Assembly (NCBI GenBank): GCA_951804945.1
Contig: OX638156.1
Location: forward strand, 43,896,001-43,960,000
Reading direction: 5' to 3'
DNA length: 64,000 nt
From: Podarcis cretensis
Taxonomy: Eukaryota
Both the position numbers and the translations under genes were made by a program. Below are positions 1,594-48,841 of this stretch, one piece after another; position 1 is the first letter of the stretch; each line of letters begins with the position of its first letter. The notes beneath the pieces were generated by a model. It was not told where the DNA came from. It saw nothing but the letters and a program-made list of their open reading frames with translations, and did not search any database.

Positions 1594-2586
1594 TTAGGTA
1601 GCTGTTCCTCCAACTGCTCCAAGCTTCTGCTCTTCCTCCGATGGTGGTAGTGAAAGTCCAAATGACAAATTTGCTATATCAGGTGGTTCCCTCTCCTCCA
1701 CGGTTCCTTTCTGCAGATCCTCCAGGTACTTCTCCAGAAATTGTTCTTTGTCCTGAATTGTTTTTATTTTAATCTTCCTTCCTTTAAAGTTAAAGGACAA
1801 TCCTTGTGGAAACTCCCATCTGAATGGTATAGTGTTTTTCTTCAGCAGGTCTACTAAACTTTTGTAATATGTTCTCACCTCTAAAATGTATTTAGGAATG
1901 TCCTTGAAAATCTGTATCTGACAATTTTGGATCACCAATGCCTTTTGATAATGCAAATTCAATATTCTATCTCTTTCTTCTTTTGATCTCAGTGTAATTA
2001 GACAGTCCCTTGGTTTTTTATCCTGCCTTCTACCCAGTCGAAAGGCTGATATTATCTCAAGTTCCTCATCTTCCTCCCATTCCTCCTGCCAAAAAGTTAT
2101 GATGTTCTCTGTAAGAAATTTCACAAGGTTGTCCCCTTCCCCTTCAGGCACCAATCTAAATTTTAAATTCTTCTCTTTACGTTGAAGTTCCAGTAAGGAG
2201 AGGGCTGCATCATGCTCATTCACTTTTTTAATAATAGGCCCAAATTTTTCCCTTGTCTCTTCAGCCGTTGTTTTTGCACTTTCTGCAATCTTTCGTGTTT
2301 CTGAACTTTCCTGAATTAATCTATTTATAGAATCTGTGTTCGATGTAACACTAGCTGTATTCACATCCAACCTTGTTGTCAACTCTGTTAATTTTTTAGA
2401 ATTCTCTGTCGATAGCTTTGTCAATGCTTCCAGGGATTGATTTATTTTAAGTAGTGCCTGAGTCATAGGATCCATAGAAGCTGGTGTTTTTTCCTGCACA
2501 GCTGCAGTTCCTGATATAGAGGCCCTTTTCTTGTGAGATTGTTTTGCTTTCTGCCTTGTTACTATCTCTTCTGTAGGGGCACTCAT
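1594..2586 (-). CDS. L1 ORF1p (coiled coil, RRM and CTD; Transposase_22-like), 330 aa
   Basis: Heptad-rich N-terminal half, KEKNLKFR RRM start, AFRLG..KPRDCLI, IFKDIP, FRWEFPQGL; lies directly upstream of ORF2. Confidence 0.95.
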   Translation of the reverse strand: MSAPTEEIVTRQKAKQSHKKRASISGTAAVQEKTPASMDPMTQALLKINQSLEALTKLSTENSKKLTELTTRLDVNTASVTSNTDSINRLIQESSETRKIAESAKTTAEETREKFGPIIKKVNEHDAALSLLELQRKEKNLKFRLVPEGEGDNLVKFLTENIITFWQEEWEEDEELEIISAFRLGRRQDKKPRDCLITLRSKEERDRILNLHYQKALVIQNCQIQIFKDIPKYILEVRTYYKSLVDLLKKNTIPFRWEFPQGLSFNFKGRKIKIKTIQDKEQFLEKYLEDLQKGTVEEREPPDIANLSFGLSLPPSEEEQKLGAVGGTAT

Positions 2587-3518
2587 ATCCTCAAGGTCGT
2601 TTTCACAGAGTTGATTCCCAAGTGGAAAATCCCACTGTTACTTTTCAAAGTGCAACAGTTTCACATAGAACCCTCTAGAGGGAGCATTCAATTGTATCCA
2701 AATGGCAAAGATAGAAGAAAACAAAGAGGCAAGGAAGTATAACAGTAGCCAGAAGTTTCCAATATCCAAATTGTAATGTCTCTATTTTCTATGTGGCCAA
2801 AATGCAACAAAGTACGTCTAAGGTCCGGTAACTTTGTTACAAACAAGTCCCCACTTCTCAAAGTTTGACAGTCCACGTCCCGGTGTCTTGTTTGGGCAGC
2901 CCGACCCCGGGGGATTTGGCAATGGAAGGTCTTAATTTTCCCTTAATTTTCCAGCAGGTTAACAACGTTCCAATCCCTTCCCCCCTTCTCCTGCCAATCT
3001 GGGGGGAGGTTTTAAGTCCGATGTCAGTTTGACAGCTTAAAAAAAAATTAGAAAGATTCCCTTTAAGTGCAGCTTGATTTTCGTTGCTTTATCTCTTCTG
3101 CAGTTCCGGGGAGGCAGACTTCCTTAATTTTTGCCTTTCCCGTTTTCAGCCGAATTTTTTTTTTTAATGTCCCGTTACTTTTTCAATCTTACTCACGGGT
3201 GTTGTAGTCAAATTCCAATTGCAGGAAGGAATCGGCGCTCTCCGCTCATGGCGACGCGGCTTCACTCCGCTAGCTGGGTGACGACTCTCAGCACCGCGCT
3301 TACCCCGATGCCGCTCAGAAGCCTTTAAAAAGGCTCCCTCACAGTACCGGGGGGCGCAAAGGGTGCCCACCGAATCTCCTTTGTTCACAGGCTCCGCGCC
3401 TGTGATTTTAGGGGTCCCCCGCTTGCCGTAGCGGGTGAGACCCGAACTAACGGAGCAGTCCTGCCTCGGAGCTCGAGGCTCGGACCGCCATTAAGCGCTG
3501 GCGCCGACCGGAAGTCTC

Positions 3519-3637
3519 GACCCGGAAGTGTCTTCGGACGGTGCTGGCTCCCGGCCTCTAGAGTGAGATGAGCGCACAACCCTAGAGTCTGTCAAGAGTG
3601 GCCCGTACGGGCAGGGGTACCTTTACCTTTACCTTTT
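3519..3637 (+). mobile_element. Sauria SINE (Squam1/POM-like) 3' fragment, cut by the L1 insertion
   Basis: Matches the 3' third of the SINE at 51483-51852 and ends in ggtacctttacctttacctttt. Confidence 0.9.
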
Positions 3638-3839
3638 AGTATGCCTAGGATTCTATCAGTGAAGATTCTGCCCCATCCATCCCTAAAATATAAAAGGAAA
3701 TAGAGTAATAAGCAAAAAAAGTGCCAGTTTTTTCCTATTGGTACTTCCCACTGTTTGAGATTCAGGGAATCCGGTCATTTAGGAGGCAAGAAAAATAACA
3801 AACTGTTTTCCCTCCTTCTCCACAGAAAGAAATTAATCC

Positions 3840-4175
3840 GGACTTCCGGGTTAGCGCCATCGCCTAATGGCGGATTCCCTCCGAGCTCCGGAGGGAATTG
3901 GCTCAACAGGGTTCGGGTCCTGCCGCGCCGGCGATGCGGGGACCCCTAAAAACCACAGGCGCGGATGCCTGTGGACGTGGTGACTCGGTGGGCACCATTA
4001 GCGCCCTCCCGACCTGCGAAGGAGCCTTTTTAAAGGCTACGGAACGGGGAAGGGGGAGCGGCGCGGTGCTGAGAGCCCTCTGCTTCCCCTGCTGAGTGAA
4101 GCCGCAAGCCATGGACGGAGAGCGCTGACTTTTTCCCTTGAACATTCGGACTAAAAGCAACAACCCGTGAGTAAT
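3840..4175 (+). promoter_or_regulatory. L1-type internal CpG-rich promoter/5'UTR with ETS-like (ACTTCCGG) and YY1-like (AATGGCGG) motifs
   Basis: Motifs lie within the first 35 nt and recur at equivalent positions in the L1 (3483-3518, minus) and, degenerate, at 46809-46840; function is inferred. Confidence 0.6.
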
Positions 4176-4665
4176 ACGGAAATTGGATTTAAAAAGGAAT
4201 TTTTGTATTTAAATTCGATACGACCGGGGAGGTGTAAAAAGGAAGTCCGCCCCCCCGCCTTGCAGACAACCTAAAGCAAGGACTAGAGAGCTAAAGTTGA
4301 GAGAAACATCTTTGTCCCCTGTGGAGAAAAACTATTAATTTCATGATTGGACACTACAATTAATTTTGCTGGAGGACAAGAGTCGGTTTGGAAAGTTAAA
4401 GTGCAACCCCCCGGGACCCGGGAGTGATCTGTGAGAAAGCCTGCTGAAAAGATACGGACTTTGACAGCTGTCAAACTAGCTGTCAAAGCTGGGAAATAAA
4501 AGGAAACGTTGTTTCTGGTGATTCTGCTGGTTAGATTTTCTGTAATTTGGATACAAATTGCTGGGAATAAAGAAAAATAAGTTACATTGGACTTTTGGAT
4601 TGGAACTGGAAAGATACTAAGTAAACAAAATCCCCCTAGAGGGGAGTTTTGGAATACTGCAAGAA

Positions 4666-5256
4666 ATGGCTGTAAGTGGAAAAATACTGACTGAGCTGAA
4701 TAGGACATTTCATCTCCTGGGAAAGCTCCAGGAATTACAGGGAGAGATCCAGGACCAGGGTAATATTTTGTCTACAAGGGTGACAACATTGAATGAAGCA
4801 GTAAATAAACTTGCTAGAACAGGAAGAGACTTGATACAAGCCTTTGTCATGGAACCAAAAGCCCTTGAAGTTGGAACAGAAGTTGCTGCAGCTGGGCAAA
4901 AGAAATCTGATAAATTTGAGAAAGTGGAAAAAGAGACATATGAGGATTTGGTGGAAAATTTGGTGGAAAATGAAGGTGAAGCTATAATGTGGAAGATCAA
5001 GGCAGATCAGAGGCCTGTTAGCACAAGTGAGATCAAGATGGAAGTTGGAGCTTTTGGGACATACAGTTTTAAAAAATTTAAGGAACAAAATTTGAGCTCC
5101 ACTTTTAAATTTAGAGGCCTGCTTGGAAGAAAAATGGTCATTACTGGGACAGATCTTCCCCGAGAGTTGGTGTTGAACACAAAGGATGGTCAAAAAATCC
5201 GGCAGAGTGAAAAGGAAAGAGTTTTAGGAGCCTCGGAAGTTTGGGATCCAGGCTGA
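4666..5256 (+). CDS. 196-aa ORF of the non-autonomous element; diverged ORF1p derivative (coiled coil, truncated RRM)
   Basis: Intact ATG..TGA. LSTRVTTLNEAVNKLARTGRDLIQ aligns ungapped with ORF1 LTTRLDVNTASVTSNTDSINRLIQ, and KEQNL..FKFRGL resembles ORF1 KEKNLKFRLV. Confidence 0.7.
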   Translation: MAVSGKILTELNRTFHLLGKLQELQGEIQDQGNILSTRVTTLNEAVNKLARTGRDLIQAFVMEPKALEVGTEVAAAGQKKSDKFEKVEKETYEDLVENLVENEGEAIMWKIKADQRPVSTSEIKMEVGAFGTYSFKKFKEQNLSSTFKFRGLLGRKMVITGTDLPRELVLNTKDGQKIRQSEKERVLGASEVWDPG

Positions 5257-6234
5257 GAATTGATGGACTGATGGATACTGATTTGGGGATCAAACCGGGA
5301 AAGGGAGGGTGGGATTTGAGAATCCAAAGGGTGTTAAAATATAGTTTGTTAAGTCCTTTTTTCTTTATATAACTTTTGTGATTTTTATGGAATGTGGGGA
5401 AATTGTGGAAGGGAAATTTGGGTCGACTTTAGGAAAAAGGTTTAAGATTAAGTTAAAATTGGGTTTTTTAAATTAATTAGAATAAGAACTTGTTGAGCAG
5501 ACAACATAAATTGGAATGCAAGAAGGGGAAGGGGGAGGAGGCCTGAGAAATAAGGTGAAAGAAGATAAGGTTCTTTAAATATTATGTGTTTTTAATTGTT
5601 TTTCTTTTTTGGATATTTTTTGTGTTTTTTAATTTTTGCTTTTTGTTCTGTTATTATATGGAAAATTTCAATAAATATTATATAAAAAAACAACAGAAAG
5701 AAATTAATCCAACCCTGTGTTCAAAAAGGCAAAGGAATTAAAAAAAACCCAAGCATTTTTGTCACCTAGCCAAATAAAATAGGAACTCTTGATAAATTCC
5801 CATTATGTCCTTGTACCTTTCTAATCAAGCACTTCAACTGTTCTTGGCTCCTGTTGATGCAATTAACTTCTGCTTCAATAACTTGCATTGCACCATGAAG
5901 AAAGAAATGCATTTCTCGTTCTTTATTACGGGTGTTAATATCACAGTATGGTTAAACCTGCTATACAACCGCTACAATCAAAATTAGATGGCTGTTCATT
6001 AAGCTGAAATGAATTACATTATTTCAGATATGCTGTACATCTCTTGGGAATGTCTCGTATTGAAATGATCTTTGGGAGAAAATTGAAGAGCGATTGCATG
6101 CTATAGGGCAAAGACATAATCTGTATGGCTTTTAGGGGGAGAAATCTTTAACAGGTAGGTTTTGCTCATGCACCACATGAGACAGGGTGTTAAATTATGG
6201 TTGTCTCTTTTCAAAGTAAAAACATACAAATAAC

Positions 6235-46806: not shown

Positions 46807-48841
46807 TCGGACTTCTGGGTTAGCGCCTCCGGTAATGGCTGAATTCCTCTGATCGGGAGGAATTTGCCTCATGGAAATCTGGGTCTGGCCGCCACGGTGA
46901 AGGCGGAGACCCACTAGAAATCACAGGCGGGTAAAGCCTGTGAACGTGGGATTCGGCTGGCACCTTTTGCGCCTCCCCTACTCGCGGGGAGACCCGGTTT
47001 CGGGGATCCGGAGCGACGTGGGGTGAGTGGCGCGGTGCTTCGAATTGACTGCTTCTTCCACGGAGCGAAGCCGCATAGCTGTTGCCGGAGAGCGCTGACT
47101 TTTTCCTGTGGACAATTTGATCTTAAAGCAACTACCCGTGAGTAGAGCTGAGAATTGGATTTTTAAACGTCTTAATTTGGTGCCGAAACAGGAGGTCTAA
47201 AACAGGAAGTCCACCTGCCCCTTTTGTAAATAGATTGAAGCAATGAGGATGCAAGCTGAAGTCTCGGAAAGCCTATTGTAAAGGACTAAATTTCCATCAG
47301 TAAAAAATACTAAACCCCCCTTGGTGGCAGGAGAAGAGGGGGGAAAGTTTTGGACTGAGTATACCTGCAGGAGAGAGTGAACAGAGTTAATATACCACCG
47401 CGCCGATCCTGGAAACGGGCTGCCAACAGGACTGACCATGATTAGAACGTTCACTGACAGTTAGTTAAATAAGAGGAATACATTGTTTCCATGGTCTCCG
47501 TCTGCGTTTAAAAAGGAGTAAAAGTAACAGAAAATTGAAACTTTATTGTTTGAATTGAGTTTAAAAGGACTAATACAAATAGAAACAATTTGGGACAAAA
47601 AGTGAACACCAATATAGAAACTATTCAGAAACTGACACAGGAATCTACTTTGACATGGCAAACTGCGGAGAAGGCTAGGGAGAAAGTTATTGCTGTTGAA
47701 CCTAAAGTAACACAATTGGAGAGAGAGTCCCAGCCTTACAGATGCAATTTGATGACCAAAGTTGATGCCTGCTATGATTGAATTTAACGAAAATCAGATT
47801 TCGAGGATCAGAGCCCTACCTGAACTGGAGAAGGAAAGTTTGATAGATTTCCTTACACAGGAATTTGATGACTTTTGGGACCGGGACTTGGGTCAAGAAG
47901 AGGTTAAAACTGTGAGGGCTCTCGGACTTGGAAGAGGAGGGAAAAAAGAGAAGAACAAAATAAGAGACTGTTGTAAATACCAGAGGAACTCAGAAGAACA
48001 ACAGTCAAGAGTGGAAATTTTGAAAGACGTCCTCAAATACCTTTCGGATCTTAGATTTAACTACGGAGATTTGGTTGCCCTGTCAAGAAGGAATAAAATC
48101 ATCTTTAGGTGGAGTTTCCCCGAGATCTACTCTTTAGCCTCAAAGGAAGGAAAATGAAAATAAGATCAGTGGAAGACAAAGTAAAGTTCATGTATAAATA
48201 TGAAGAAGACTCACAGAAGGGACTTGGAAAAGAGTTAAGAGCATCGGACAGAAGATCACCAGGTTGATGGACTATAGGGAATTGGCGGATATGACTGGCA
48301 GAATCCGGGACCAGGGAGAAGAGTCAGTGGAAGAAGATTGGAAAAAGTTTAAAGATTATTTATAAAAATATTGTAAAATTAATGAGTGTTAGAAAAATGT
48401 TGGAAAGGAGCTATATGGCTTTAGTAGAAATGTTACAAGGAATTAAGTACAAATAGATTATTAGAGTATTAAAGGGAAAATAAAGTTAAAATATGTTAAG
48501 ACAATTATATATTAAAGGGAAAAATAAGGTTAGAATATGCTAAGATAAATTACAGGACAGAAAACTGAGGAAGATGGAAAGGAATTGCTGAAACAGTTAA
48601 TTAAAGTGGAATACAAAAAGGGAGGTGTGAGGAGGTTGTTGAAACAAGTAAATGAAAGTTAAGATACTGAACTTATTAGATGTGTTTTAAATTGTCTTTG
48701 TTTGGTTTTGTTAATTTAATGTTTGGGGGTTGGTGTTGTGTGGTGTTTTTGTTTTTGCATTGTATTGTTTTGTTTTGTTTAATTCTTTGTCTTTCTTTTG
48801 CAGTCTTTAAAATGTTAATAAATATTATTTTTTTAAAAAAA
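46807..48841 (+). mobile_element. 'Half-L1': 5'UTR, decayed ORF1, last ~40 codons of ORF2, 3'UTR and poly(A)
   Basis: 19-bp TSD gaaacacaattatcttttg (46788-46806 and 48842-48860); 5'UTR homologous to the other two members; AATAAA at ~48817. Confidence 0.93.
47530..48260 (+). pseudogene. Frameshifted L1 ORF1 remnant
   Basis: VNTNIETIQKLTQES, RIRALPE..LIDFLTQ, ILKDVLKY, IIFRWSFPE and KGRKMKIRSVEDK match ORF1 at 1594-2586 across frameshifts. Confidence 0.9.

Follow-up and report, generated by a model that had tools for sequence, protein, structure and literature searches.

An ORF2-less, L1-descended retroposon in Podarcis cretensis, probably one of a multi-copy family with a reduced ORF1

A 64,000-nt stretch of the genome of the lizard Podarcis cretensis (contig OX638156.1, positions 43,896,001 to 43,960,000 of the forward strand; hereafter the window, with coordinates counted from its first base) carries a 1853-bp element at 3840–5692 on the plus strand. 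It is probably a full-length copy of a multi-copy, non-autonomous Podarcis retroposon family that descends from L1, lacks ORF2 and retains a reduced first open reading frame (ORF1). The family would be a reptilian analogue of HAL1, a non-autonomous L1 derivative that encodes only the ORF1 protein (ORF1p) and has had several independent origins in mammals (PMC5753468). A first-pass annotation, made from the sequence alone, had proposed an ORF2-less, L1-derived retroposon at this position, and this proposal is upheld by a target-site duplication (TSD) together with an empty site in a related species, an L1-type 5' untranslated region (5'UTR), the descent of the ORF from ORF1, and the absence of endonuclease (EN) and reverse transcriptase (RT) sequences.

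Insertion, copy number and non-coding regions

The element is bracketed by an exact 18-bp TSD (ACAGAAAGAAATTAATCC) at 3822–3839 and 5693–5710, with zero extra matching bases on either side and no third occurrence nearby; the expected chance count of such 18-mer repeats in the span is about 4e-5. Logan contigs from four public runs (X1, X3, X6 and X13) were placed on 3600–5900, those at least 85% alike being taken as look-alikes. In organism G (run X13), an 863-nt contig joins 3613–3821 straight to 5693–5900 and so presents the empty site, where the TSD is found only once. Contigs of organism A (X1) span both element junctions with 0 differences, while organism B (X3) shows 6 differences over 282 nt in the contig at the 5' junction and 2 in that at the 3' junction. 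Since the site is filled in A and B and empty in G, the element was inserted by retroposition, as a full-length unit, in a lineage to which A and B belong and G does not, and the insertion postdates the split of organism G's lineage. The main parts of the insertion, all on the plus strand, are as follows.

3822–3839, plus strand: 5' copy of the TSD (ACAGAAAGAAATTAATCC), an exact match to 5693–5710; one copy, and no element, in the organism G contig
3840–4170, plus strand: conserved L1-type 5'UTR head, putative internal promoter and CpG island (identity to two L1-type heads; GC 0.62, CpG observed/expected 0.91)
4171–4665, plus strand: variable part of the 5'UTR, with block-wise similarity to L1 5'UTR
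4666–5256, plus strand: the 196-aa ORF (stop included), a cut-down ORF1 derivative (ORF list; full-length relatives P0022, P0024, P0025 and P0026; profile links to ORF1p)
5257–5692, plus strand: 3'UTR, with AATAAA at 5670–5675 and an A-rich tail at 5684–5690 (a run of seven A)
5693–5710, plus strand: 3' copy of the TSD (exact repeat, and the empty site of organism G)

Over the element, contigs at least 85% alike reach 50–250 times flank depth in the four species. In X1, for example, the flanks have a depth of 75–140 and the ORF bins a summed depth of 4.8k–25k, with comparable ratios in X3, X6 and X13. Some near-identical contigs are found at 10–18 times single-copy depth in the four species, one of them being a 143-nt contig at 5035–5177 with 1 difference and a depth of 1344 compared to about 100. 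The depth of the look-alikes stays high across the junction between ORF and 3'UTR, and the absence of a drop at this point means that the ORF2-less arrangement itself is repeated. As a rough estimate, it would be present in tens to a few hundred copies.

The 5' end is related to those of two other L1-type elements in the window, a full-length L1 on the minus strand and a second ORF2-less element at 46807–48841, both of which are described further below. Element positions 1–351/458 share 69–72% identity with 46809–47162 and with the minus-strand L1 5'UTR at 3516–3181. The head opens with GGACTTCCGGG, and a start resembling this motif is common to all three elements. In the form (G)GACTTC(C/T)GG it is found at 3842–3849, at 46811–46818 and, on the minus strand, at about 3515–3508, and includes an ETS-like ACTTCCGG at +3 (within 3842–3849 in this element), which is possibly a candidate site for a factor that fixes the start site of these lizard L1 promoters. 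The donor-like motif CCCGTGAGTA closes the conserved 330-nt head and is invariant in the three 5'UTRs (4164–4173; 47135–47144; about 3193–3184 on the minus strand); it could be a 5' splice donor, implying a spliced 5'UTR, or a U1-binding site. Further downstream, a palindrome (CCCCCTAGAGGGG) at 4632–4644, 21 nt upstream of the ATG, has a counterpart (CCCTCTAGAGGG) in the neighbouring L1 at 2671–2682, about 85 nt upstream of its ORF start, and the pair represents a conserved 5'UTR block that was left unaligned by MAFFT.

At the other end, the last 250 nt or so of the element (element positions 1593–1842) show 70–72% identity to 48340–48828, the 3' end of 46807–48841 (E 1.6e-10, plus weaker collinear matches), and TGATGGACT, at or just after the stop codon, is common to both. 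A tblastn search with residues 1–528 of the neighbouring L1 ORF2 detected no EN/ORF2 similarity below E 0.5 in the element. An element of 1853 bp with an ORF of 196 aa has no room for an RT, the RT part of the neighbouring ORF2 lying outside the window. A search of Rfam with 3500–5900 gave no match. The anatomy given in the first-pass annotation therefore holds: a perfect 18-bp TSD, an L1-family 5'UTR, one uninterrupted 196-aa ORF (the sole ORF listed, at 4666–5256), a 3'UTR related to that of 46807–48841, AATAAA followed by an A-rich tail, and neither EN nor RT; the multi-copy family that it called for is seen in the contigs of the four species. Two antisense ORFs, of 141 aa (4283–4708, minus strand) and 152 aa (4735–5193, minus strand), lie opposite the 5'UTR and the ORF; they probably result from the purine richness of the sense strand.

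The 196-aa ORF and its relationship to ORF1p

Searches with the single sequence were uninformative. The 196-aa ORF gave no match in Pfam, no usable match in the ESM Atlas, zero matches in a word-based search of 5.8 billion proteins, and no significant BLASTP match to the neighbouring ORF1p or to translated pieces of 46807–48841; nor did a sensitive blastn comparison of the ORF region with the two L1-type neighbours give a significant match. A hidden Markov model (HMM) of ORF1p scored the single ORF at 2.6 bits, a value equalled by 23 of 500 shuffles. An exhaustive HMMER search, by comparison, retrieved full-length relatives of 171–212 aa with 34–46% identity: P0022 (201 aa, 39% identity over the full length, E 5.5e-14), P0026 (201 aa), P0025 (212 aa) and P0024 (171 aa, from a cluster of five). 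When the word-based search was repeated with the family alignment, only P0033 was gained, a 154-aa fragment. All of these relatives (P0022–P0033) come from Logan contigs of 0.9–1.4 kb. In their alignment (A3) they share a start, MAxxGK..L.R.F.LLGKLQ, a G.FG motif, and an end, ..R(D)L.FN.KD.Q..R..G.ER.LRASD..PG, that is followed by the stop codon; the N- and C-terminal blocks are conserved, and the middle is variable with many indels.

At the level of profiles, descent of the ORF from ORF1 is supported. Against the same set of 70 sequences, the short-family HMM matched the canonical ORF1p P0010 (17 bits, E 1.8e-5), the RNA recognition motif (RRM) piece of 46807–48841 (20 bits, E 2.5e-6) and its tail piece (15.5 bits). 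Viterbi profile-profile scores were compared with column-shuffled and reversed controls: family versus ORF1p gave 162.9, compared to 135.1±2.2 for column shuffles (maximum 141.1) and 135.2 for the reversed profile. A separable signal links aa 131–196 to columns 250–323 of the ORF1p C-terminal domain (CTD), with 147.8 compared to 133.8±2.1 for shuffles; the first 60 residues alone give no significant profile-profile signal against ORF1p. The ORF1p HMM aligns P0025 (10 bits) and P0033 (8.6 bits) collinearly, and individual motifs have recognizable counterparts, NYGSLAYLLRRN of P0025 corresponding to NYGDLVALLRSN of canonical ORF1p, and WPELENE of P0033 to VPELEKDN. A sequence search of the PDB with the family profile returned spurious coiled coils only and no solved ORF1p, whereas the canonical lizard profile (A2, 19 ORF1p-type proteins) matches the RRM-CTD of human L1 ORF1p, 2ldy, with an E value of 1.4e-6. 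The parental lineage was probably a P0010-like L1, and not necessarily the L1 that lies next to the element.

Profile similarity to ORF1p had been named as a check on the first-pass annotation and was thus obtained, although not in the way that annotation had argued. It had aligned the N-terminal part of the ORF without gaps to the coiled coil of the neighbouring ORF1p (L35 on ORF1p L69), an alignment that has 17 identities in 85 positions and a BLOSUM62 score of 7. A score at least as high was reached by 109 of 1000 shuffles, and the register one heptad (7 residues) away scores 8, so that the alignment reflects heptad periodicity and not demonstrable homology. The parts of the ORF, as delimited from the alignments and predictions, are given below.

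4675–4848, plus strand: N-terminal heptad-repeat helix, a predicted coiled-coil stalk, aa 4–61 (heptads; AlphaFold2 helix; modelled bundle)
4849–5016, plus strand: acidic, weakly conserved middle, aa 62–117 (net charge -6; variable and indel-rich in A3)
5017–5100, plus strand: RRM remnant, ..QRPV / IKMEVGAFGTY, equivalent to FKIVSAFRLG of ORF1p (gap in A3; family HMM and ORF1p HMM alignments)
5101–5253, plus strand: degenerate CTD remnant (FKFRGLLGRKMVITGTDLPRELVLNTKDGQ) and conserved basic tail ..GASEVWDPG (profile-profile comparison; P0025 motif; tail match of 46807–48841)

Judged from these comparisons, the ORF is a reduced ORF1 that has lost the basic N-terminus and the RRM core and has kept the heptad stalk, a degenerate piece of the CTD and a basic tail. 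The stalk runs over eight heptads with hydrophobic a/d positions (I,T,L,I,L,L,L,L / L,L,Q,G,V,V,G,F), and AlphaFold2, given a shallow alignment, predicts a helix at residues 5–61 with a pLDDT of 55–77, the remainder, including the C-terminal half, being unstructured. Met1 would correspond to about residue 35–38 of ORF1p, and on this reading the basic N-terminal region is gone. The middle of the ORF contains an in-frame 12-nt tandem duplication at 4947–4970 (LVEN LVEN). A gap of 35 residues in this ORF and in P0024, relative to P0022, P0025 and P0026, marks the deletion of the first half of the RRM, and the second half is missing across the whole short-ORF family. The RRM segment that remains is aligned by the family HMM with the RRM of 46807–48841 and of P0010, and by the ORF1p HMM with P0025 and P0033, the PELE motif included. 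The CTD segment has lost about 20 residues, is predicted to be unstructured and has no PDB match, yet carries the profile signal on CTD columns 250–323. All five family members carry a net positive charge in the C-terminal 66 residues (+1 to +11, with 11–16 K/R).

Two earlier readings of the C-terminal half were dropped. KEQNL..FKFRGL had been described as the RRM entry motif, but the relatives have a CTD segment, NYGDLVALLRSN..FPQGLSF.KGRK, at this position, and FKFRGLLGRKMVITGTDLPRELVLNTKDGQ is accordingly placed in the CTD. The tail ending in WDPG had been called novel, but it is the family-wide ...LRASD..PG end, which is also present in 46807–48841. Of the loss that had been suggested for both RRM core and CTD, the former stands, while the CTD appears to be degenerate and still present in part.

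The frame appears to have been preserved. Two indels are listed inside the ORF, one of +3 nt (4987) and one of -36 nt (4897–4934, in two species), both in frame, and two X3 contigs imply an additional in-frame 12-nt gap within 4642–4904. The ten listed outside the ORF, in what is a partial listing, are all of 1–2 nt, as are those among family copies in the variable 5'UTR (4171–4665). This pattern points to frame preservation, from which it would be expected. In a neutral simulation from this ORF to about 42% identity, with substitutions only, 0.2% of frames stayed open; given this expectation, the existence of several open relatives with the same ends argues for selection on the frame in active lineages. 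The idea that an ORF so diverged and still open may be under selection is thus strengthened by the open frames of relatives at 34–46% identity.

Possible roles of the protein and comparison with known systems

Homotrimers of ORF1p form via the coiled coil, and human L1 requires the positively charged N-terminal region (PMC5940361). In the scheme that we favour, the L1-type CpG-island 5'UTR would drive transcription of the element, AATAAA would direct polyadenylation, and EN and RT borrowed from an autonomous L1 would copy the element into the genome, as its ancestry, together with the A-rich tail and the 18-bp TSD, suggests. The TSD, the AATAAA and the tail are consistent with L1-type target-primed reverse transcription. 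The protein, of about 22 kDa, would oligomerise via its N-terminal coiled coil during translation and, without an RRM of its own, would most likely join ORF1p-type trimers, leading to packaging of the RNA and access to the ORF2 protein (ORF2p). Such co-assembly with a helper ORF1p is plausible, but we rate it at somewhat under an even chance, the remainder going to self-assembly or to no function of the protein. A more specific proposal is subunit mimicry, in which the nascent protein, consisting of stalk and basic tail, would co-assemble with helper ORF1p on the parasite's polysome and thereby load RNA-binding modules and ORF2p onto the parasite RNA; this is put forward tentatively, as less likely than not. 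Where Alu mimics an RNA structure, the present family would then mimic a protein subunit.

Structure prediction was applied to a complex of two copies of the neighbouring ORF1p (residues 36–135) and one of the 196-aa ORF product (residues 1–66). The 2:1 complex scored 0.63, compared to 0.00 for the best control, and took the form of a parallel three-helix bundle over ORF1p residues 41–98, with a contact agreement between runs of at least 89% and a partner pLDDT of at least 79. The score passes the mark of the tool, a mark that 51 of 78 solved complexes and 2 of 108 mismatched pairs also attain and that was calibrated on other kinds of pairs. The co-trimerisation that the first-pass annotation had suggested for multimer prediction is therefore reproduced as a model, which we regard as suggestive only, since the family probably stems not from the neighbouring L1 but from a P0010-like lineage.

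A number of points weigh against these interpretations. The controls for the complex were unrelated proteins and not coiled coils, and the register of the bundle (offset 34) may follow from the points at which the chains were cut. The AlphaFold2 model of the protein is poor (mean pLDDT 48.6), and members of the P0024 subfamily have prolines in the stalk, so that not every family member would have a long coiled coil. Amplification is read from contig depth, and, as the tool itself warns, summed contig depth is not equal to copy number. The collection of relatives holds called ORFs only, which introduces an ascertainment bias. At the 12 best-supported ORF positions where the contig majority differs from this copy, 11 of the differences are nonsynonymous, 1 is synonymous and 0 are stops; this copy looks neutral, as expected of decay after insertion, a pattern that carries no information on selection at master copies. 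At several positions the majority residue is closer to ORF1p, as with S36T (giving LTTRV). The L1 origin of the 3'UTR and the dependence on L1 ORF2p are deduced from TSD length, A-tail and ancestry alone, the 3' end of the neighbouring L1 being beyond the window, and among RNA runs none was found to hold the element.

Other explanations account for parts of the same evidence. The protein may act alone, with the stalk forming homotrimers, the basic C-terminal remnant binding the RNA of the element in cis, in the manner of full ORF1p in HAL1 and L1, and ORF2p as the only thing borrowed. The net basic C-terminus of all five members fits this, as does the concentration of conservation in the N- and C-terminal blocks, and a stalk without significant similarity to helper ORF1p is what would be expected if lineages avoid mixing. 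However, the protein lacks the RRM core and much the greater part of the CTD, the regions that bind RNA in solved ORF1p, its C-terminal half has no predicted structure, and the heterotrimer model passed the mark; on balance we think it unlikely that the protein acts in this way. It is also conceivable, if improbable, that the frame is kept for reasons other than its product, either because translation itself is useful (for example, by taking the RNA to ribosomes that are making ORF2p, or by avoiding decay) or because the conserved ends hold RNA or DNA signals inherited from L1. The weakly conserved, indel-rich middle of the protein and the 11 nonsynonymous differences out of 12 would be in keeping with this, and the conserved tail adjoins a post-stop TGATG overlap, common to 46807–48841, that looks like a relic of an ORF1/ORF2 junction; against it, the blocks are kept as amino-acid motifs at 34–46% identity, start and stop alike, and the heptad pattern is held over 8 heptads.

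The same predicted 2:1 bundle can be read as a poison subunit, a dominant-negative member of helper ORF1p trimers that lowers L1 activity, either as a competitor or as a brake favoured by the host. From the architecture of the trimer (PMC5940361), a member without an RRM would leave it one RNA-binding module short. The element needs L1 activity to spread, however, and its abundance and recent activity in several species make this quite improbable. The empty single-sequence searches could suggest a one-off, internally deleted and dead L1 copy with an ORF open by chance, but a hundreds-fold excess of look-alikes over the ORF and the ORF–3'UTR junction in four species, and the existence of diverged full-length relatives, rule out a chance ORF in a dead fragment for practical purposes and leave this explanation barely credible. 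A host gene or domesticated ORF1 was likewise considered and dropped: the ORF is in a mobile, TSD-flanked, multi-copy element, the insertion of which is absent from organism G.

Returning to the reading of an ORF2-less retroposon family with a reduced ORF1, the closest comparison is with mammalian HAL1. Mammalian half-L1 elements encode a whole ORF1p. As in these, the 5'UTR, an ORF derived from ORF1 and the 3' end have been kept, ORF2 is absent, and the element has been amplified as a family; derivation from L1, lack of EN and RT, and amplification in ORF2-less form (from contig depth) are all HAL1-like features. A complete ORF1p, by contrast, is not present, as the RRM core and basic N-terminus are absent and the CTD is degenerate. 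The family also differs in having an independent, lacertid origin from a lizard L1 lineage, and because both host and parent are of lizard origin, common descent with the mammalian lineages (HAL1, HAL1B and HAL1M8) is implausible. No description of ORF1-only L1 derivatives in squamates was found in the literature, the repeat libraries Repbase and Dfam being outside this comparison.

Compared to Type II L1 ORF1p (coiled coil, RRM and CTD, as in human L1ORF1p), the protein has an N-terminal heptad stalk and collinear remnants, but is without the RRM, of which only the remnant GAFGT is left, and without the positively charged N-terminal region; its family profile does not match solved ORF1p, in contrast to the canonical lizard profile mentioned above. 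Retroposons of the Alu and SVA type are similar in their TSD, A-rich tail and trans-mobilisation by L1 ORF2p (which for this element is presumed), but they are non-coding, whereas a conserved ORF and a putative L1-type promoter are carried here. L1TD1, a domesticated mammalian ORF1 gene (PMC4161310), is another case of an ORF1-derived protein outside an autonomous L1, but is a single-copy host gene, unlike this mobile, TSD-flanked and multi-copy element with an insertion that is absent in a related species.

The half-L1 idea is hereby extended from mammals to reptiles, and in an unusually reduced form: a recently active and abundant reptile family with a protein cut down to a stalk and remnants, the frame of which has been open across a deep divergence. 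For annotation, elements of 1.8–2.2 kb of this kind should be treated as a non-autonomous family of their own, and not as broken L1 fragments or lizard genes. Many L1 lineages coexist in squamates, and ORF1p coiled coils evolve fast. If the protein matters, the family would show which part of ORF1p is needed by an L1 parasite and would provide a natural system for the mixing of ORF1p subunits between elements, which bears on cis-preference, on competition between L1 lineages and on the fast evolution of the ORF1p coiled coil. Interest would rise if mimicry of a helper ORF1p subunit were shown. L1 coiled coils would under such mimicry be exposed to selective pressure to escape, which would offer one cause of their fast evolution.

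Neighbouring elements in the window

The minus-strand L1 extends from about 3517 to the left edge of the window, 320 bp from the element. It is a full-length and apparently intact L1 with a CpG-island 5'UTR, and from its sequence is a candidate active autonomous element. Its ORF1 (1594–2586, minus strand) is intact and encodes 330 aa; related proteins are found among the annotations of Podarcis muralis and P. lilfordi, where one carries the name 'L1 transposable element RRM domain-containing protein'. The ORF2 starts at 1586 and is open to the edge over 528 of 528 codons, with a match to Exo_endo_phos (E 1.5e-13).

The second ORF2-less element, at 46807–48841 on the plus strand, is about 2 kb long and has its own 18-bp TSD (AAACACAATTATCTTTTG). 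Its ORF1 is frameshifted, with recognizable RRM and CTD, and is 53% identical to P0010-type ORF1p. It resembles the element at 3840–5692 in the 5' head, the 3' end, the ORF tail (..LRASD..SPG) and the post-stop TGATGGACT, and differs from it in keeping the RRM and CTD and in being frameshifted. It looks like a less reduced relative or an intermediate, and the two may share one ORF2-less ancestor rather than being of independent origin.

Between the minus-strand L1 and the element, at about 3520–3660, lies part of a repeat of very high copy number (GGTAAAGGTAAAGGTACCCCTGCCCGTACGGGCC..., minus strand), with a summed contig depth of 5.7 million in X1 and many contigs linking it to other places. 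We take it to resemble the head of a Squam1/Sauria short interspersed element (SINE). This flanking SINE fragment also bears CACTTCCGGGTC.

Among the proteins related to ORF1p, two Podarcis muralis entries in UniRef (P0013 and P0014), described as 'TRIM39-like', have RING and B-box Pfam domains in addition to a region that is 48–51% identical to 75–82% of the L1 ORF1p query, and represent either a gene model that has run into an L1 or a TRIM-ORF1 fusion. Canonical-looking ORF1p relatives were also found on contigs of 1.88–1.93 kb, the size of an ORF1-only element (P0001, P0003, P0004, P0009 and P0020, the last being a 182-aa form that is short at the N-terminus), and these contigs of about 1.9 kb could be further half-L1 lineages or transcripts.

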